Below, one piece after another: positions 13,097-58,539 of a stretch of DNA of 64,000 nt (its first letter is position 1; each line of letters starts with the position of its first letter). Both the position numbers and the translations under genes were made by a program. A model generated the notes under the pieces. The model was given only the letters and a program-made list of their open reading frames with translations. It made no database searches and had not been told where the DNA came from. This DNA is from Blastocladiella emersonii ATCC 22665 (lineage: Eukaryota > Fungi > Blastocladiomycota), in assembly GCA_025594325.1 (NCBI GenBank), contig JANHCV010000004.1:2232001-2296000 (forward strand). The letters are read 5' to 3'.

Positions 13097-13392
13097 GCGC
13101 GCGAGGATGGGTTCGCGTGGCGTGCGTGCCGCGGCGGGTGCGGCCGCCGCCGAAGGAGATTTTGTTGTCGTTGTCGATTGCTGCTGCAGAGTATTGATCC
13201 TGTTCTGACCCTCCCCCCACGCCCTCCTCGAGAACTCGCTGAGCGCGACGGTCATCCAGCGCCGCCCTCACGTGTGGTGGTCGGCGGCAACCCGTCGCCT
13301 CCCTCGCGACCGACCTCGCCCCTCCCGGATTGCTCCCACCGCTCCCTCTCAGCGATCAACGCAAACACACCCACTGCAACGTATCAACAACC

Positions 13393-14508
13393 ATGTCGTG
13401 GCTCACCACAGCCGCCATCATCCTCGTCCCGTGGGGCTACCGCAAGTACGCCGAGCACCGCGCCGCGGCCGCCTCGGCGCCCAACAAGCCCGGCACCGGC
13501 GCCGGCGCCGGTCGTGCGAAGGCGCTGTCGACCTCAGACTACCTCTACTACGCGCTGTGCGTGGCCATCATCCTGCACCAGCTATGGACGCTCCTCCTCC
13601 CGACCTTCGACGCGTTCGAGACGACGGGCGTCGCACTCGACGCGCCGGCCTGGGTGCTGCGCAACGCGCTGGCAGCTCACCTGTCGCGCGCCGGGTACAC
13701 GAGCACGACGCTCTCGTTCGACGACGCGGCGTCCCGCTCAACCGTCGCCGCATCCCATACGCTCGGGTTCGCGGACCGGGTCGTGCTGACGTTCCAGCTG
13801 GTGCGGTCGAGCGCGGCGCTGCGCGGGGTGCACGCGGCGTTCGGCGCCGCCACGCTGCTCGGGTGCGCGTACTGCCGCGACCCCGCCGACTACTGGACGT
13901 ACGCGGTGCCCGCGGTCCTGGCGCCGTACGCGGTGCGGGCCGCGGTGTTGGGGGTGCTGACGGCGCCGCTGGAGCGGGGCCACTGGCGCGCGACGGCGGT
14001 CACGGTGCTCGCGGCGATGGCGGGCGTCGAGGCGCTCGTCCGGTTCGATGTCGTTGACCTCGCGTGGATGCTGGGTGGGACCGCCGCCGAAGCCGTCCTC
14101 CGCGTCGACCTGCCGCACCGCGCGCTCGGTAAGATCCACGCCATGGTGACGGTCGTGCTCGTCGGCGCGATCGCCGCGTTCCCGCGCTCCGATAAATCCG
14201 CGGGCGCGGCGCAGGTGCTCGCCGAGGAGGTGATCCCGGCGCTCAACGCGGCGCAGCGGCTCGCCGTGACGACGGGACTCGCGCACGCGGCCGTGATGGG
14301 CGAGCCCGAGGCCCGCGCCAAGTACGTCGAGGTGCAGGCGGCGCAGGCGCGCGCGAATGACCGCGTGCGCGCTGACGCGAGTGTGGCGGCGGCACGGCGC
14401 GAGGCGGCAGCGAGGATCGGGCTCGGCGACCGGCTCGAGGCTGTCGTCAAGGCGGATGTCCAGAAGCTGCTGGCCGAGGGGCTCGGCGTCAACGACGACC
14501 AGGAGTAA
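13393..14508 (+). CDS. Uncharacterised multi-pass membrane protein
   Basis: Intronless ORF with strong GC3 bias, several hydrophobic helices and a C-terminal helical region. No family recognised. Confidence 0.75.
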   Translation: MSWLTTAAIILVPWGYRKYAEHRAAAASAPNKPGTGAGAGRAKALSTSDYLYYALCVAIILHQLWTLLLPTFDAFETTGVALDAPAWVLRNALAAHLSRAGYTSTTLSFDDAASRSTVAASHTLGFADRVVLTFQLVRSSAALRGVHAAFGAATLLGCAYCRDPADYWTYAVPAVLAPYAVRAAVLGVLTAPLERGHWRATAVTVLAAMAGVEALVRFDVVDLAWMLGGTAAEAVLRVDLPHRALGKIHAMVTVVLVGAIAAFPRSDKSAGAAQVLAEEVIPALNAAQRLAVTTGLAHAAVMGEPEARAKYVEVQAAQARANDRVRADASVAAARREAAARIGLGDRLEAVVKADVQKLLAEGLGVNDDQE

Positions 14509-14537
14509 CTCGTAATGTATACACACGCTCATCTGAT

Positions 14538-15273
14538 CTACAGCTCGGCGTCGACCTTGCGCCCGGCCACGGTCCACTTGCCGTGCAGGACCGTCTTCCC
14601 GTCGTCCTCGATGGCGGCCTCGATGGCGTCGCCCGGCTTGACGCTCCCGACGCCCTTGGGCGTACCCGTCAGGATCACGTCGCCCTCCTGCAGCGTCATG
14701 ATCTGCGACACGTGTGCGATGAGCTTGGGCACGCCGAAGATGAAGTCGCGGGTGGTCCCGTCCTGCTTGGTGGCGCCGTTGACCTTGAGCCAGAGACGGA
14801 CGTTGTGCGGGTCCTTGATCGCGGCGGCGGGCACCATGTCGGTGACGGGGGTAAAGTCGTCGAACCCCTTGGCGACCGACCACGGCATGCCCGCCTTCTT
14901 GGCCTTGTCCTGCAGGTCGCGCGCCGTCATGTCGATGGCCAGCGTGTACCCGGCGACGTGCGCCATGGCGTCGGCCTCGCGCACGCGGCTCGCGGGCTTC
15001 CCGATCACGACGCCGAGTTCGACCTCGTGGTGCACGTCGCACTGCTCCGGGATCGTGATGGCGCGGCCCACGGGGCAGTAGCTCGACGTCGGCTTCAGGA
15101 AGAACATGGGCTTGGTCGGCACCGCGTTGCCGAGCTCCTTGGCGTGGTCGCTTCACGGAGGGTGAGGGTTAGCGCCGTGGTCGCGGGCGAGAGGGCGGGT
15201 GCGGAGGGAGCCCGTACGCAAAGTTGCGGCCGATGGCGACAATCTTGCGGCCAGTGTGGCGGAAGGCAGACAT
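14538..15273 (-). CDS. FAH-domain protein (FAHD1/Fmp41-like acylpyruvase/oxaloacetate decarboxylase)
   Basis: RKIVAIGRNFA-(intron)-DHAKELGNAVPTKPMFFLKP, HHEVELGVVIG, IDMTARDLQ, WSVAKGFDDFTP, GDVILTGTPKGVG. Confidence 0.92.
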
Positions 15274-15495
15274 GGTTGGTGCGTGATACGTTGCAATAAG
15301 CGGACGTTGGTAGATGGTAGAGGAGAGAGAGAGGAGGAGAGAGAGGGGGTTGGGGTTCCCTCCGTCGTGTTGACGGCCAGGCGGACCCGACCGGGCGAGC
15401 GAACGACGCGCCGCCGAGGCCCCGGACCCGTTCTCTCTCTCCCCTCCTCTCTCCTCTCCTCCTCCCTCCCCTTCATCGAAAACCCACGCAACACC

Positions 15496-16624
15496 ATGAA
15501 GTTTGACGGCTACGGCACCGACGACCCGCGCATGGGCCACATTCTGGTCGACGCGCCCGCGGGTGTCCCGCTCGCGTCGGTGCTCCCCGCCGGCGACGAC
15601 GCCAAGCCGCGCATCGCCTTCATCGGGTTCCCCGACGACCAGGGCGTCGCGCGCAACGGCGGCCGCGTCGGCGCCGCGCACGGGCCCGAGGCCGCGCTCA
15701 AGTACATTCGCAAGGTCGGCACCATCGTCAACGCCGAGTACGACGTCGATCTGCGGTACGGCTTCTCTCTCCTCCTCGCTCGGGTGGCGGGTTCGCGGCA
15801 CTCACTCGTTGTGCGGATGTAGCACGATCCATCTCGTCAACGCGGGCCCGATCCAGTCCGCGCCCAACGCGCTGTCGGTCGAGGACGCGCACGTTGCGCT
15901 GCGGGCGCGCGTCGCCGAGGCCGTGTCGGCGGGCTTCATCCCGTTCGTCCTCGGCGGCGGCAACAACCAGTCGTACCCGAACGCGCGCGGGCTCATGGAC
16001 GCGCTGCCGCCCGCGACGCCGCTCGCCGTCATCAACATCGACGCGCACATGGACGTGCGCCCGTTCGTGCAGGGCGGGCTCGCGCACTCGGGCTCGCCGT
16101 TCCAGCAGCTGCTCAACGACGCCGAGTTCGCGGGCCCGACGCGCCGCGGGCATTTCGTCGAGTTTGCGCTCCAGGGGTCGCAGTGTTCCGCGGAACACGT
16201 CGCGTTCCTGCGGTCGCGCGACGGCCGGCGCCACCCGGGCGTCGGGACGACGACCGACCTCGTGTGGCTGCGCGACGTGGTACCGAGCACGCCCGAGGGC
16301 GGGGCCGTCGGGACGTCGGCGTTTGCAGCGCAGTTCCGCTTGCTACTCGACGAGTGCGCGCGTGGCGGCGAGGGTGCCGTGTTCGTGTCGTTGGACCTCG
16401 ACGCGGTCCGCGGCTGCGACGCGCCGGGCGTCTCGTGCGCGTCGCCGCTCGGGCTCACGGCGCAGCAGGCGCTCGATATCTGCTACGTCGCCGGCACGCA
16501 TCCGGCCGTCAAGCTCGTCGACCTCTCCGAGTATAACCCAAAGGAGGAGGAGTACCGCACCGGCCGGCTCGTCGCCATGATGGCGTACTACTTTGCCATG
16601 GGGCTCACGCAGCGTCGCAAGTGA
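15496..16624 (+). CDS. hutG: Formiminoglutamase (arginase family, HutG-type)
   Basis: GFPDDQGVARNGGRVGAAHGP is a HutG-type N-terminal signature. Ureohydrolase motifs GGGNNQSY, INIDAHMDVR, HSGSPF and SLDLDAV. One intron, 15756-15822. Lies directly upstream of a histidase gene. Confidence 0.8.
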
Positions 16625-17229
16625 GGGATCTCGTAGCCGCAGTCGATTCAATATACTATTCGACTCGTTTTGATACAATCTACAGTCCATGTCAGCGACG
16701 TGGCGCGGCCCATCAGCCGGTCCTCCCTGCACGCCAAATCCAGGCACACACAAGCGCGATGACTCGAGGCCCACGAGGCTTCGTTCGTATTGCCGGGCGG
16801 CGTCGTGAAGCGCCGTGGCTGCCGCGCGGTTGATGCCGCATCTGATCTCGCCCCGAGAGGGCGGCCGGCCGGCGGCCTCCGACGCGACGCGGGACGCGCC
16901 GGCCACCGCTCACGTGGGCGGCTGAACGGGACGCGCGCCCATTGGGCGGCCACTTAAGCGCCAAACGCACGTCGCACGTGAGCAAAAGTGTCTCGCGTCG
17001 CGCGGTCCCGCTGCCCGCGGACCCGCGGACCCGCGCCGGGCAGTGCAGCGGACCCTGCCCGTCGGCAGTACCTGCGCAGCCTGTGCGGGCCGCGCGGACC
17101 CCCGTTGGGGACGGGGCCCGACTACAAAAGCCGCGCGGCTCCAGCTGCCCGCACTCGGCTCCTCACCTCTGCGACACGCGATCGCACCTCCGACTCTCTC
17201 TCTGCAACGCACCAACGCATCAACCAACC

Positions 17230-19056
17230 ATGCCCTACTCGAAGACCAACCCCAAGATCTTCCTCCTCGACGGCGAGTCGCTGACTCCCGAGGAGCTCGT
17301 CCTGCTCAGGTCCGTCCCTGCAAGTCGCCGACGTCCAGTAGGATGCACGCGCTGACGCTCCGATCCCATCCCTGTCGCGTCCGCGTAGCCATGGCAACCA
17401 CACCATCGACCTGACCGAGACCGCCTGGGAGGTACTTACTTCCTGACCCATGGCTCCTCCCGAGCCGCGCTCACCTTCCCGTCCCATGTCCCCTCTCCTC
17501 GTAGCGCATCGCCGAGTCGCGCGCGCTCGTCGAGAAGCTCGCGTCGTCGGGCAAGGCCATCTACGGCATCAACACGGGCTTCGGCAACTTTGCCACGGTC
17601 ACCATCCCCGACGACCAGCTCTCGCAGCTGCAGATCAACCTCATCACGTCCCACTCGGCGGGTACGGGCCCCGCGCTGAGCCCCGCTCGCACCCGCATGT
17701 TGCTGGTGCTCCGCATCAACGTGCTGGCCAAGGTGCGCTCTCTCATTTACGCTCGACGTGGCTCGCGTCCGGTCCACTAACGATCTCTTCTTCGCGACAC
17801 AGGGCTTCTCGGGTATCTCGCCCAAGAACGTCGGCTGCATGCTCGCCGCCTTCAACAAGGGCTGCCTCAGCTACGTCCCCGAGCAGGGCACGGTCGGCGC
17901 GTCGGGCGACCTGGCGCCGCTCGCGCACCTGGCGCTCGGCATGATGGGCATGGGCAAGATGTGGGACCCGACGCTCAACCAGTACGACGACGCGGCCGCC
18001 GTCCTCAAGCGGCACGGCCTGACGCCGATCCAGCCGGGCGCCAAAGAGGGGCTCGCCATGATCAACGGCACCCAGTTCATCGCGTCGCACGGCGCCGAGG
18101 CCGTGGTGCGCGCGTCGCTCGTCGCCAAGCAGGCCGATGTGGTCGGCGCACTCACGCTCGAGGCGCTGCAGGGCACGCCGCGCGCGTTCGACCCCAAGGT
18201 CCACGCGGCGCGCCCGCACCCGGGCCAGGTCGCCTCGGCGGCGCGCCTGCGCGCGCTCCTGCACCGCCCCGACCACCCGTCCGAGATCTTCGAGGCGCAC
18301 ATCGACTGCGCGCGCGTCCAGGACAGCTACACGCTGCGGTGCATGCCGCAGGTGCACGGGGCGTCGGCCGATACCGTCGAGATGGTGCGCGAGGTGATCA
18401 CGACCGAGATGAACTCGGCTACGGACAACCCCATGTGCTTTGCAGAGACGTCGAGCATCGTCTCTGCCGGCAACTTCCATGGGGAATACCCCGCCAAGTT
18501 CCTCGACTACCTCACGATCGGTGTGCACGAGCTCGCGTCCATCTCGGAGCGCCGCATCGAGCGGCTCATCAACCCGACGCTGTCGGGTCTCCCCGCGTTC
18601 CTCGTCGCCAAGGGCGGGCTCAACTCCGGGTTCATGATCCCGCACTGCACGGCCGCCGCCCTCGTCTCCGAGAACAAGCAGATGGCCAACCCGGCGTCGA
18701 CCGACTCGATCCCGACCTCGGCCGGCAAGGAGGACCACGTGTCCATGGGCGGGTTCGCCGCGCGCAAGTGCGTCAAGGTCGTCGAGAACGTCGAGAAGGT
18801 GCTCGCCATCGAGCTCCTCGCCGCGTGCCAGGCCATCGAGTTCCACCGCCCCAAGAAGACCACCCCGGCGCTCGAGGCCGTCTACGCCCTCGTCCGCAGC
18901 AAGGTCCCCGCCTACGACGAGGACCGGTTCATGGCCCCCGATATCGAGGCTGCCTGGAAGCTCATCCGCTCCGGCGCCGTCTGGAACGCCGTCGCCAAGC
19001 ATATCGGCGAGCAGCCCGCCGACCACGAGGTGCACGACGGGCTCATGGGCCTGTGA
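17230..19056 (+). CDS. hutH: Histidine ammonia-lyase (histidase)
   Basis: [21 protein letters not shown]-forming [55 protein letters not shown]-like [18 protein letters not shown]. Three short 5' introns. Confidence 0.95.
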
Positions 19057-41900: not shown

Positions 41901-43080
41901 CTACGCGTCGCCTTCGCCAAACAGATCCACGCCAAACAACGACCGCGGGTCAAAGTACCGCTTGCGCGTCTGCAGGGCGCCGAGCGTGACCATCTCCATG
42001 TCCGAGAGCCCGAGCGAGCCCGCGTCGAGGTTCTCGGCGAGGCGCGCGGGAGACGTCGACTTTGGGATCACGGCGGTGCCGCGCTGCAGCGCCCACGCGA
42101 GCAGGACGCGCGCGGGCGAGCACGCGTGCCGCTCCGCGATGCCCTTGACCATGGGGTCGTCGAGGAGTTTCGGGGCCGTGTCCTTGGCTAGACGGTTCGC
42201 GGCGCGGTGAGTGTCGCGGGAATCGAGATGCCGCGGCCAGAGCCGCGACAGCCGACTCGGTCAGCGGCGAGGAGGGCTAAAGCGACGTGGCGTACTGAAA
42301 ACGGATGACGGCGAGCCGAGCGGGCTGTACGCGACGGGGACGATAGCGTGCGCGTGGCAGTACTCGACGAGGTCCCTCTGCGGGAGATACGGGTGCATCT
42401 CGTTCTGGACGACCGTGGGCGGGATCCGCGCGACCTGCTGGATGCGCTTGAGGTGGTCGAGGGTGACGTTGGACAGGCCGAGATGACGTACGAGCCCTTG
42501 GTCGACGAGTGCCTGCGTCAGGGGTGGAGGTGAGTCTGCGGGCCGAGATACGAATGAGCTCGCCCGAGGTGATGCTGCGCACCTCCATGGCGGCCCACGT
42601 CGCCTCGAGCATCGTAGCCGTGTCAAAGCGCCACTTGCCGTGCTCGTCGACGGGGTTGGTCACGTCGGCGCCGTGGAACTCGACGGGCAGCGGCCAGTGG
42701 ACGAGGAGCAGGTCGAGGTAGTCGATCTGCAGGCGGCGCAGCGAGTCGCTTACGGCGTCGGCGACGCGCGACGGGTGCATCCACGTCACCCACAGCTTGG
42801 TCGTGACGAACACGTCCTCGCGGCGGCGCGGCGGGTCGGCAGCGGGCGCCGCGAGCCAGCGCGCGAGGCCGGCACCGACAGCGACCTCGGCGTTGTCGTA
42901 GACCCAGGCCGTGTCAATGTGGCGGTACCCGAGCTCGAGGGCGCGCGTCACGGCGTCGGCGAGCACGTCGGGCGACGCGGCGCCCCACGTCCCGAGCCCG
43001 ACGGGCGGGAGCGGGCAGGCGGGTGGTGAGGGTGCCGATGCAGGCACGTTGCATCGAGTTTCGTGGTGTGGCGTTCGCAT
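41901..43080 (-). CDS. Aldo-keto reductase (AKR1/Gcy1-like)
   Basis: GLGTW, GYRHIDTAWVY, VFVTTKLW, DYLDLLLVHWP, LGLSN, QNEMHPY, AYSPLGS, VIPKS..PARLAEN. Confidence 0.93.
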
Positions 43081-49217: not shown

Positions 49218-51690
49218 TTACACGGCGACCGTGACGCGCTTCGTCTGCTGCCCACGCGCCGATCCGGCCGCCGGCGGCTCCTCGCCGCGTGCGTGCGCGA
49301 CGGGCCGGACCGCGAGCGGCGGCATCGCGCCCGGGTCCTTCTCGAGGCGCGACCGGAGATGCGGCGCGTCGTTGAGCGCGGCCTCGAGCGCCGCTAGCCG
49401 CGTCCACTTGGCGCGGGCGAGCGCGAGCTTGGCCGTGACCTTGCCGGCGAACTCGGCCGAGTACAGTTTCGCGTGGTCGACGGTCGCGTGCGTGTGCGCC
49501 TCGGCGTTGGTCAGCAGGATCGCGTTCCACGGCGTCAGCGGCTCGCGCATGTCCCAGCGCACCAGGACCAGGCGCGACAGGTGCCGGTCGCCCGACACGG
49601 CCGAGTGCCCGTTCCAGATCACCTCGACCAGGTGCGCTACGTCGTCTTCCGTCAGGTAGTGCGAGACGAGGACTGGGTCGATGGACGCGGTCGTGGACGA
49701 GCGCAGGATTTTGTCCTCGGGGTGATGTTGCTCCGGCTCGGTCGCCGCAGCGTCGGCGTTGCCGTCGGCCTCGGCCAGCGCCGACACGAGCGGCGGTGGC
49801 TTACGCAGGAGCGGCGGCGGGACGGGAGTCCCCGTGAGCGCGGCCTCGGCGAGTCGAATCGCGGCGAGCATGCGGACGTACTCGTCGTCGCACTGTCGCT
49901 TGGACCCGGCGTTGCGCTGCTCCTGGCACGTGTGGCACAAGCCGACGTTGTGCGTGGTGGTGCTGAAGTGGAACGAGGTGCTGGGCAGGTACCGCTCGCA
50001 CGACTTGCACACGTACACGTGCTGGGACTGCCGCTCGTCGATGGCGGCGATGCGCGCCGCGGCCGAGTGGTGCGGCGGCGTGATGCCCGCCTCCGGGTTG
50101 AACTCGGGCACCGAGATGAACTTGAGGAACAGCGCCGCGATCCGCTGCCGTAGGCCGTCCAGGCACGCGCCGTCGCGCCCGCGGCACAGCAGGTCGCCCT
50201 CGCGGTTGATCAGCTGGATCAGCGTCTGCGTCAGCTCGCAGTCGTACTCCTTGACCGCGTTCTTCACCTGCAGCAGGATGTTGAGCCGCGCGTCGACCGC
50301 CACGCTCCCGTTACCCAGCGTGCAGTACAGGTCCCGCAGCTCCCGCGCGCGAAGCGTCGTCGGCGTGTCGACCAGCACCACGCCGCCGCGCGCCAAAGGC
50401 CACTTTTTCGAACCCGCCATCTACTCGCGCAGCGCGGGATAGCGTCAGTGATCCGATTTTGCGTGTGTACACGCGATGGCGAACGAACCTGCTCGATCCA
50501 CCGGTGCGTCGACTTCTGGCGCGCCTCCTCGGACGCCTCGGCCTTGAGGTTCTCGAGCTGCTGGATCAGCGTGGCCTCCTGGTTGAGCAGCTCCGACAGC
50601 TTCTCCTGCCGCGTCTCTGTGTCGAGGTCCGCCGCGTGGATCTTTTTCGCCTCCTGCGCGCGCCACGCTACACACCCAGGTCCGCGGTCATTCTTCGGCC
50701 CGCGTGCTCGCGCCGCGTCAAAAACGTACTCTCGAGCCCACTGTACAGCAGCGCAAAGTCCTTGACCGTCTTCGGGTTCACGCGGCGCTGGATCTCGCGC
50801 CGGCGCTGCTGCTCGGACAGCTCGAGTGCGCGGCGCCGCGCGAGCTCCTCGGCGGCGCGTTTCCGCTCGCGCACCTCGCGCACCTTGCGCACGCGGCGGA
50901 TCGCGCGCACCTTGCGGAAGAAGCACTGCAGCACGATCACCTTGCTCACAATGAACCGGAACCGCTCTTCCGCCGTCTCGTACGCGCGCGGGACCAGGAC
51001 GCGGTCCGTGTCCAGGGTCAGGTGCAGGTCCGAACGGACCATCTGCGTCCCGCTCTCGCGCACCGACTGGACGACGCGGTGACGCGTGAACTTGGTCTGC
51101 ACGTCCCGGTGGAACTTTTCGCCTTGCAGCTACACACACGCGCGCGGGGTGAGATACGCGGTGAGGACGAGGGTGGGCGAACGAACCTGCGCGCGCTTCT
51201 CCATGGGCGTCGGCGTCTGCGTGGCCGCGTGCAGGTAGATGAGCCCCGACTTCTTGTGCCGGTACCCGCCGAGGTACGGCTTGTTGATGAGCCGCCGGCC
51301 CGTGTCCTCTTCCCCAGAAACCGTCGTGGGCGGCGCGGTGCTGCTCGGGGTCGTGTCGTGCGACGTGTTGCTGTCGCCGGGAGGGAGCGGGCTCACGGCG
51401 TGCTCGGTGACGGGGACGGCGTCCGTGGCCGCGCGCGAGTCCTGCCCATCGTCGTCCTCGAGCTGCGACACGGCCGTCGTGCGGCCCGTTGGGACCTGCC
51501 CGTCGTCTTCGCCGCCGTCGTGCGGTCCAGGTTCGGGTTGCGCGGCCGTAGTTGCCGCGTCCGTCACGTCGGTCCACTCGCTCGCGTGCGTGTCGTCAGC
51601 GGCCGCCGCGTCCGTGACCGGGACCGCCGCCGAGTCGAGCGCGGGCTCGGGGCTGTCCCGTTGCGGGAGCTCTCCATCGGTTGTATCCAT
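49218..51690 (-). CDS. IQUB: IQ and ubiquitin-like domain protein (flagellar radial spoke)
   Basis: KPYLGGYRHKKSGLIYLHAATQT, IQ-like VIVLQCFFRKVRAIRRV, RRVNPKTVKDFALLY, RLNILLQVK, LVRWDMREPLTPWNAILLT. Confidence 0.88.
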
Positions 51691-57417: not shown

Positions 57418-58539
57418 TCACTCGTCCTCGGGAAACTCGGCCGCAACCACCTTCCCCGCGCGCTCGAGCGCGCCCTTGGCCTCGCCCGCCCACGCGTTGT
57501 CCTCGGCGACCATGCCCAGGATCCGCGTCCACGTCGCGCACACGGTATTGAGGAACCCGCGCGCCGCGCGCGTGTCAATCGGCGGCTCCGCACACGCCGC
57601 GCCGAGCTCGTCGAGCGCCGCCTCGAGCACGTCCGTGAGCCCCGGCAGCTGGTCGAGGTCCGCGGCGTTCGGGATCGCGTCGAGCGGCAGTTTCGCGGCC
57701 AGCGACGCCGCGAGCGACGCCAGCTTGTGCACGGTGCGCAGCGGCGCGAGGTCCGACTCGCTCGCGGGCTCCGCTTCGGTTTCTGAGTCGGCCTCAAAGT
57801 CGGACCCCCAGTCCCCGCCGTGCGTGCCCTCGGCAAACTCGTCGACCGACTCCTTGATCTCGGCGGCCACGTCGCGCACGAGCGCCACGTGCTTGGTCCA
57901 CGACGCGCGCACCGCGTCGGCGTTCGTCCGCGGCGCGGCGGCCAGCAGGTCGGCGGCCTTCCACGCGACGCCCGTGTTGAGGAGGTACTCGCCGACGGGA
58001 TCTTCCGCACCCGACTCGGCCGCAGCCGCAGCCGCAGCCGCAGCCACGTCGTGCAGGAACCCGCGCGCGAGGGCGCGCACCGCGCGCAGGATCTCCTCGG
58101 CCGTCGCGAAATGCGCCTTGCGGACCGTCGCGCCGAGCGCCGGCGGCCGCGTCGCGACGTGTGCGGCCAGCTGCGTCGTCAGCGTCACGAGGTTCTTGAC
58201 CTCGGTCCGCGACGCCGACAGGGACACGCTCGCAGACTCCTTGTGCACGAGCGCCAGCTTCGTGATCCCGTGGTGCAGGTGCTTGCCGACCGCCGTCAGC
58301 TGCGTCGCGTAGAAGGTGGCGTCGAAGTCGGGCTCGGCGAGCGCGAGGGAGGGCGTGGCCGACTCGGAGGCGAGGAGCGCCAGGTTCGTCGTCACGGCGG
58401 CCACGAGTTGCGCCAGCGGCGCGGCGATCGCGGGGACCGACGCGGGCGAGGGGGAGGAGGAGGACTTGGCGGCGGCGGCCGACGCCGAGCGCGCCTTGGC
58501 CTTGGCCTTCTTGGCTGCAGCGAGCGCCTTGCCTGCCAT
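57418..58539 (-). CDS. GCIP/CCNDBP1-like (Grap2 and cyclin-D interacting) protein
   Basis: The helical pattern ITKLALV...LGATVRK...LNTGVAWKAADLL..APRTNADAV...LVRDVAAEIKE resembles the GCIP domain (recognised from memory). Confidence 0.6.
   Translation of the reverse strand: MAGKALAAAKKAKAKARSASAAAAKSSSSPSPASVPAIAAPLAQLVAAVTTNLALLASESATPSLALAEPDFDATFYATQLTAVGKHLHHGITKLALVHKESASVSLSASRTEVKNLVTLTTQLAAHVATRPPALGATVRKAHFATAEEILRAVRALARGFLHDVAAAAAAAAAESGAEDPVGEYLLNTGVAWKAADLLAAAPRTNADAVRASWTKHVALVRDVAAEIKESVDEFAEGTHGGDWGSDFEADSETEAEPASESDLAPLRTVHKLASLAASLAAKLPLDAIPNAADLDQLPGLTDVLEAALDELGAACAEPPIDTRAARGFLNTVCATWTRILGMVAEDNAWAGEAKGALERAGKVVAAEFPEDE

Follow-up and report, generated by a model that had tools for sequence, protein, structure and literature searches.

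A histidine ammonia-lyase/formiminoglutamase gene pair of Blastocladiella emersonii as the probable core of a native fungal histidine-utilisation cluster

The gene pair and its models

The window analysed here, a 64-kb stretch of the Blastocladiella emersonii ATCC 22665 genome (64,000 nucleotides; positions 2,232,001 to 2,296,000 of the forward strand of contig JANHCV010000004.1), holds two neighbouring plus-strand genes, gene A and gene B, which are predicted to encode the last and the first enzyme of histidine utilisation (Hut), a formiminoglutamase and a histidine ammonia-lyase, respectively. The pair is very probably the two-gene core of a native fungal Hut cluster, complete in Chytridiales, and not a recent bacterial import. 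Gene models were read from the sequence and checked by script, and the original prediction of two same-strand, intron-containing genes about 600 bp apart agrees with the 605 bp found between the gene A stop and the gene B ATG, as well as with the one intron of the former and the three introns of the latter. The features of the pair are as follows:

15496-16624, plus strand: formiminoglutamase gene A, 353 amino acids (aa), one intron; identical to database protein P0001 (H9P43_004550)
15496-15755, plus strand: formiminoglutamase exon 1, whose translation equals P0001 residues 1-86, followed by 2 further nucleotides (nt)
15756-15822, plus strand: formiminoglutamase intron, 67 nt, GTACGG...TAG, with GT..AG borders
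15823-16624, plus strand: formiminoglutamase exon 2, ending in the TGA stop; P0001 residues 88-353, with GGGNNQS, DAHMD, SLDLDA and the PF00491 match
17230-19056, plus strand: histidine ammonia-lyase gene B, about 534 aa, ATG at 17230, stop at 19056
17310-17388, 17432-17504 and 17733-17802, plus strand: lyase introns, all GT..AG
17230-17309, plus strand: lyase exon 1, matching the lyase gene of Allomyces in tblastx
17389-17431, plus strand: lyase exon 2, 43 nt, placed by reading frame and GT..AG borders
17505-17732, plus strand: lyase exon 3, 76 aa, with the Ser-His pair in ITSHSAG; PF00221 4.3e-25, hutH 6.8e-25
17803-19056, plus strand: lyase exon 4, 417 aa plus stop, with the ASG triad for the 4-methylideneimidazole-5-one (MIO) group

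The split codon bridging the two exons of gene A gives the Arg that stands between P0001 residues 86 and 88, and the GC content of the gene-pair region (65-74%) is similar to that of its flanks.

Enzyme identities and the predicted pathway

For the profile comparisons, the lyase was matched exon by exon and the formiminoglutamase as the full-length database protein P0001. Against the hutH equivalog of NCBIfam (TIGR01225; cut-off 539.15), exon 4 of the lyase gene, taken alone, reaches 559.9 bits; the tyrosine/phenylalanine lyase and mutase models score far lower than hutH, with tyrosine aminomutase (316.8 bits) as the next-best model. With the hutH cut-off passed by a single exon and the MIO-forming ASG triad (within GTVGASGDL) present in it, the histidase assignment that had been read from the ASG/MIO motif is supported. 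The Ser-His pair of exon 3 occupies the substrate-selectivity position of the MIO-enzyme family. The best solved relative of exon 4 is PDB 6v6h (500.7 bits, 3.3e-149), presumably the Trypanosoma cruzi enzyme, and the Pseudomonas enzyme scores about 315 bits.

Gene A matches the Pfam Arginase family (PF00491) with 87.6 bits (cut-off 22), and the best solved relatives of P0001 are the T. cruzi formiminoglutamase structures 2a0m (E 4.7e-67) and 4mxr (E 2.4e-66), aligned over residues 27-352; the next PDB matches are Vibrio HutG 1xfk (4.8e-13) and arginases/agmatinases at 1e-8 or weaker. The agmatinase and arginase models, at 51 and 38 bits, are likewise much lower than the best NCBIfam model, which is hutG (TIGR01227). 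GGGNDQS is carried by 109 of the 120 relatives of gene A and GGSNDQS by three (GG[GS]N in 114/120), and it is this prevalence of GGGNDQS that makes the Asn at a metal-ligand His position a hallmark of the family. The GGGNNQS motif, noticed earlier for precisely this Asn, is indeed present in gene A, in which all five remaining metal ligands, those of DxHxD and DxD, are retained as DAHMD and SLDLDA. The earlier statement that trypanosomatid formiminoglutamase has the same substitution was also correct, as the PDB alignments give GGGNDQS for T. cruzi and GGGHDQS for the engineered variant 4myn, which has His at the Asn site.

The activity of the T. cruzi formiminoglutamase is described as experimentally confirmed (PMC12203737, citing Hai et al. 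2013). Judged by its sequence, gene A would encode a formiminoglutamase of the T. cruzi type, dependent on manganese, and the original assignment of the arginase-fold protein to the formiminoglutamases appears to be borne out by a full-length homology to the T. cruzi enzyme that lies far above that to arginases and agmatinases. The part of that assignment which does not stand as well is the “bacterial-style” label given to the last step: the formiminoglutamase type holds, but the label is loose, as this enzyme type is widespread across eukaryotes.

In the proposed pathway, the gene B lyase would take ammonia off histidine to yield urocanate, urocanase and imidazolonepropionase would convert urocanate to N-formimino-glutamate, and the gene A formiminoglutamase would hydrolyse the latter to glutamate and formamide, so that the predicted route ends with the hydrolytic enzyme known from T. 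cruzi and not with the folate-dependent one of animals. Neither hutU nor hutI was found in the 64-kb window by tblastn with the Nitrospinota hutU and hutI. The urocanase for which a genome search had been proposed was, with the Catenaria urocanase as the query, found on another, 5.1-Mb contig: this urocanate hydratase (P0242, 686 aa) passes the cut-off of the hutU equivalog (406.9 bits, cut-off 375), and no hutI or other pathway gene lies within 10 kb of its gene. Urocanase and formiminoglutamase are listed on different contigs in all five blastoclads. Expressed sequence tags (ESTs) for urocanase and imidazolonepropionase have been reported for B. emersonii, along with the proposal of a histidine-to-glutamate catabolism that was lost in later fungi (PMC1550239, Ribichich et al. 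2006). Because of the urocanase on another contig and these published ESTs, the four-step pathway from histidine to glutamate is probably complete in B. emersonii.

Conserved adjacency, ancestry and a shared upstream module

The adjacency of the two genes, which the original prediction took for a clustered module, is conserved in relatives, where the following arrangements are seen (FAHD, fumarylacetoacetate hydrolase family):

Allomyces javanicus: lyase (minus), formiminoglutamase (plus), FAHD (plus)
Catenaria anguillulae: formiminoglutamase (plus), lyase (minus)
Obelidium mucronatum (chytrid): urocanase (minus), imidazolonepropionase (minus), formiminoglutamase (plus), lyase (plus)
Rhizoclosmatium sp. 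JEL0117 (chytrid): lyase (minus), imidazolonepropionase (minus), formiminoglutamase (plus), urocanase (plus); families checked by profile

The lyase/formiminoglutamase pair occurs in three different orientations across Blastocladiella, Allomyces and Catenaria, and all four hut genes stand side by side in the two Chytridiales, in two different orders. An adjacency that recurs in five genomes of two fungal phyla, in differing arrangements, is more than chance. Chytriomyces sp. MP71 probably also has its urocanase and formiminoglutamase on one contig, since each is listed on a contig of 40,964 bp. When compared by tblastx, the Catenaria and chytrid loci have nothing in common with the window except the two hut genes, whereas Allomyces has several further window genes (aldo-keto reductase, IQUB, GCIP, FAHD) in scrambled order. 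An operon of a T. cruzi-type formiminoglutamase with hutU and hutI is found in Nitrospinota (locus L006, 10001-13912) and therefore lends independent support to the formiminoglutamase assignment of the gene A family. No hut clustering was seen at the Capsaspora, Acrasis and Balamuthia loci, nor around the urocanase of the aphelid Amoeboaphelidium.

A few observations made at these loci can be recorded alongside. No lyase gene is present within 10 kb of the Nitrospinota operon. In Rhizoclosmatium, the next gene after the four-gene Hut cluster encodes a lysine-ketoglutarate reductase/saccharopine dehydrogenase of lysine catabolism (L009 13922-17012), and about 9 kb from the Catenaria pair there is a fused EutB-EutC, i.e., a B12-dependent ethanolamine ammonia-lyase of 827 aa (L002 1-1023), a bacterial-type enzyme that is unusual in a fungus. 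The Paraphysoderma amidohydrolase encoded 6 kb from the formiminoglutamase was considered as a hutI and rejected, as it is a guanine deaminase.

The ancestry of gene A was approached with a quick IQ-TREE phylogeny of 110 relatives, with SH-aLRT (Shimodaira-Hasegawa-like approximate likelihood ratio test) supports, an unrooted tree with a poorly resolved backbone. The four core blastoclad formiminoglutamases form one clade in it (support 100), joined by Paraphysoderma and Sorochytrium (91), and the blastoclad sequences adjoin those of Capsaspora and a nucleariid (93). All six named bacterial formiminoglutamases fall into one separate clade together with 26 metagenomic sequences (97), and the other half of the tree holds named Amoebozoa, Discoba and Hydra. 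This Nitrospinota clade, the only named bacterial one with a T. cruzi-type formiminoglutamase, lies within the tree half that holds the opisthokonts, which makes an old transfer in either direction possible. The formiminoglutamase of Arcella intermedia (P0027), an amoebozoan, stands inside the strongly supported Chytridiales clade, which suggests either chytrid contamination of the transcriptome or a transfer.

For gene B, one genome per prokaryotic species was scanned for sequences matching two peptide patterns, which yielded 80 loci, and the tree consists of these 80 prokaryotic lyases and four fungal ones only. Within this set, the prokaryotic lyases reach no more than 56.7% identity, the fungal lyases are 62-80% identical among themselves, and the four fungal sequences form one clan against all 80 prokaryotes (SH-aLRT 100). 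Taken together, the four introns of the pair, its flank-like composition and the two trees, which group the genes with eukaryotes and fungi, argue against a recent bacterial acquisition. The suggestion that the module is perhaps of bacterial origin is thus, when understood as a recent import, not supported, given the opisthokont grouping of the formiminoglutamase, the fungal lyase clan, the introns and the GC content.

A comparison of the 605 bp preceding the lyase gene with the 1.6 kb in front of the unlinked urocanase gene brought out a composite three-part module present in both:

16939-16981, plus strand: composite module, CCATTGG, 4 nt, CCACTTAAGCGCCAA, 10 nt, CACGTGA; 249-291 bp before the lyase ATG
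L012 9746-9798, sense strand: urocanase-locus module, CCATTGG, 4 nt, CCACTTAAGCGCCAA, 20 nt, CACGTGA; 203-255 bp before the gene start

The exact 15-mer CCACTTAAGCGCCAA occurs once in the window (16950-16964) and once in the 22 kb of the urocanase locus (L012 9757-9771), each time on the sense strand, and CCATTGG (an inverted CCAAT box) has its single occurrence in the window here. A shared 15-mer by itself arose in 3 of 400 dinucleotide shuffles, and for all three parts to recur in order by chance is far less probable than for the 15-mer alone. The 15-mer core was not found at the Allomyces, Catenaria and chytrid loci. In B. emersonii, the module is thus a candidate cis-regulatory element of a Hut regulon that the lyase and the unlinked urocanase gene may have in common. 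As neither promoter of the pair contains an HGATAR site, nothing there points to a GATA-type nitrogen regulator.

The neighbours of the pair include the following:

15273-15218 and 15150-14538, minus strand: FAHD-type gene, 222 aa, PF01557 1.2e-57
15274-15495: intergenic stretch of 222 bp separating the divergent start codons of FAHD and formiminoglutamase

The divergent promoter of about 220 bp described earlier for FAHD and hutG is accordingly 222 bp long. FAHD adjoins the formiminoglutamase in Allomyces too, and does not do so in Catenaria or the chytrids; since Allomyces retains several window genes in scrambled order, this neighbour is probably left-over synteny, outside the Hut module. 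The aldo-keto reductase, IQUB and GCIP genes (42027-43012, 49341-51301 and 57826-58234 in the window; L001 15045-19560 in Allomyces) lie farther from the Hut pair. Between a hemerythrin-like gene and FAHD, there is a 392-aa open reading frame (ORF) with hydrophobic stretches and no Pfam family (13330-14508, plus strand). Two further long ORFs run antisense, one of 430 aa opposite the lyase (17743-19035, minus strand) and one of 472 aa opposite a real gene (13738-15156, minus strand); the former was rejected as a gene, having no Pfam match, and such ORFs are to be expected in coding DNA of 70% GC.

Competing readings and comparison with known systems

Several findings weigh against seeing the pair as the core of a native Hut cluster and have to be set out before it is accepted. 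The hutG model, although the best NCBIfam match of P0001, gives 112.2 bits against a cut-off of 229.15, a shortfall because of which gene A is not a classical HutG; the Nitrospinota relative P0102 likewise stays under this cut-off (167.4 bits). The residue following the Asn ligand is Asp in 112 of the 120 relatives and Asn only in B. emersonii (P0001) and Catenaria (P0003), and even the Vibrio HutG 1xfk has an acidic residue there (Glu, in GGGHE), which gene A lacks and which is not known to be needed for catalysis. The pair is not kept in Sorochytrium and Paraphysoderma, both Blastocladiomycota, and clustering is therefore not required for function. The 222-bp FAHD/formiminoglutamase promoter contains no CCATTGG, no CACGTG and no 15-mer CCACTTAAGCGCCAA, for which reason the module is no evidence for co-regulation of the adjacent pair. 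The lyase and the arginase-family gene both go unmentioned in the EST paper (PMC1550239), and the imidazolonepropionase of B. emersonii is known only from an EST. Allomyces and B. britannica retain Asp after the Asn ligand, so the Asp-to-Asn change must have either arisen twice or reverted.

The first two of these points are also what would favour taking gene A for an arginase-fold hydrolase that acts on agmatine, a guanidino acid or arginine instead, or for an inactive relative, placed beside the lyase by coincidence: the score is under the hutG equivalog cut-off, the Asp-to-Asn change beside the metal ligand is unusual, and T. brucei has a metal-free arginase-like relative. We consider this highly unlikely in view of the full-length homology to the characterised T. 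cruzi enzyme, the retention of the other five metal-ligand positions, the much lower agmatinase and arginase scores and the presence of same-clade members in hut operons or clusters of both bacteria and chytrids. That the pair might instead be a fragment of a bacterial hut operon, horizontally transferred into zoosporic fungi, is an idea to which the formiminoglutamase route (the textbook bacterial ending), the operon-like clustering itself and the Nitrospinota clade with its formiminoglutamase-hutU-hutI operon in the same tree half as the fungi lend some appeal. The chance of it is nevertheless very slight. Both genes have spliceosomal introns and a GC content like that of their flanks; the formiminoglutamases of blastoclads stand with those of Capsaspora and the nucleariid, and the named bacteria are set apart in a tree whose other named members are eukaryotes from Amoebozoa, Discoba, Holozoa and Fungi; and the prokaryotic lyases reach no more than 57% identity, against 62-80% among the fungi, which form one fully supported clan. 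An ancient transfer, in either direction, would be compatible with these data.

A more serious competitor is neutral left-over synteny, i.e., an ancestral gene order that has simply not been broken yet, with no selection for clustering. The genes that Allomyces and Blastocladiella have in common around the pair, in scrambled order, would be consistent with it, as would the loss of adjacency in two blastoclad relatives and the separation of urocanase from formiminoglutamase in all five blastoclads. In Catenaria and the two chytrids, however, the hut pair is all that is common with the window, and yet the two genes are immediate neighbours there in differing orientations, which implies repeated local rearrangement without separation; moreover, Chytridiales have the whole four-gene pathway in adjacent genes, in two different orders. 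Neutral synteny thus seems unlikely, and the native Hut cluster remains the preferred explanation, in which selection for co-inheritance or co-regulation would have preserved the adjacency. A more far-reaching scenario, which can be offered only tentatively and which we ourselves find somewhat doubtful, is that a four-gene Hut cluster, already present in the ancestor common to Chytridiomycota and Blastocladiomycota, stayed whole in Chytridiales, was reduced to the pair of first and last steps in Blastocladiales, and was dispersed or lost in later fungi, with the dispersed genes of B. emersonii held in one regulon by the CCAAT box/15-mer/E-box module.

As regards known systems, the closest is that of T. 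cruzi, whose formiminoglutamase shares with gene A the arginase fold, homology along the full length, Asn for the first metal-ligand His and the kept DxHxD and DxD ligands, and whose pathway has the same layout of lyase, urocanase, imidazolonepropionase and formiminoglutamase. The B. emersonii protein differs in its motif (GGGNNQS, not GGGNDQS), in carrying some 30 inserted residues around positions 222-262 and in having Val for the Cys of the T. cruzi PYDEGC motif, and the fungal genes bear introns and are clustered. The classical bacterial HutG (TIGR01227; Vibrio 1xfk, Bacillus 3m1r) belongs to the same superfamily, probably performs the same reaction and is likewise encoded near other hut genes, but the score of gene A is less than half of the cut-off of that model (112 against 229 bits), its matches to 1xfk and 3m1r are at E of about 1e-10 to 1e-13, HutG keeps the His (GGGHE), and the fungal genes, unlike those of hut operons, are separate intron-bearing transcription units.

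Clusters of nutrient catabolism are familiar from other fungi, such as the DAL cluster for allantoin in yeast and those for proline, quinate and nitrate in Aspergillus. The Hut cluster resembles them in that genes of successive steps are neighbours and that the neighbourhood is kept while order and orientation change; it differs in the pathway (histidine), in its occurrence in early-branching zoosporic fungi and in that B. emersonii has no more than two of the four genes side by side, and no pathway-specific regulator or transporter gene was seen in it. The four-gene cluster of chytrids and the two-gene remnant of blastoclads provide a clean case for studying how clusters of primary metabolism form or decay in early fungi. 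No paper on this cluster was found in a full-text literature search, whose coverage of the literature is incomplete. The enzyme types as such were already known, and the pathway was partly anticipated in the work that dealt with the same pathway in the same organism (Ribichich et al. 2006; PMC1550239), to which the present analysis adds the first and last enzymes, the genomic arrangement, the conservation of the pair and the four-gene cluster of chytrids. New are the Hut cluster with its distribution, the enzymes identified for steps 1 and 4, and the upstream module that the lyase and urocanase genes have in common.

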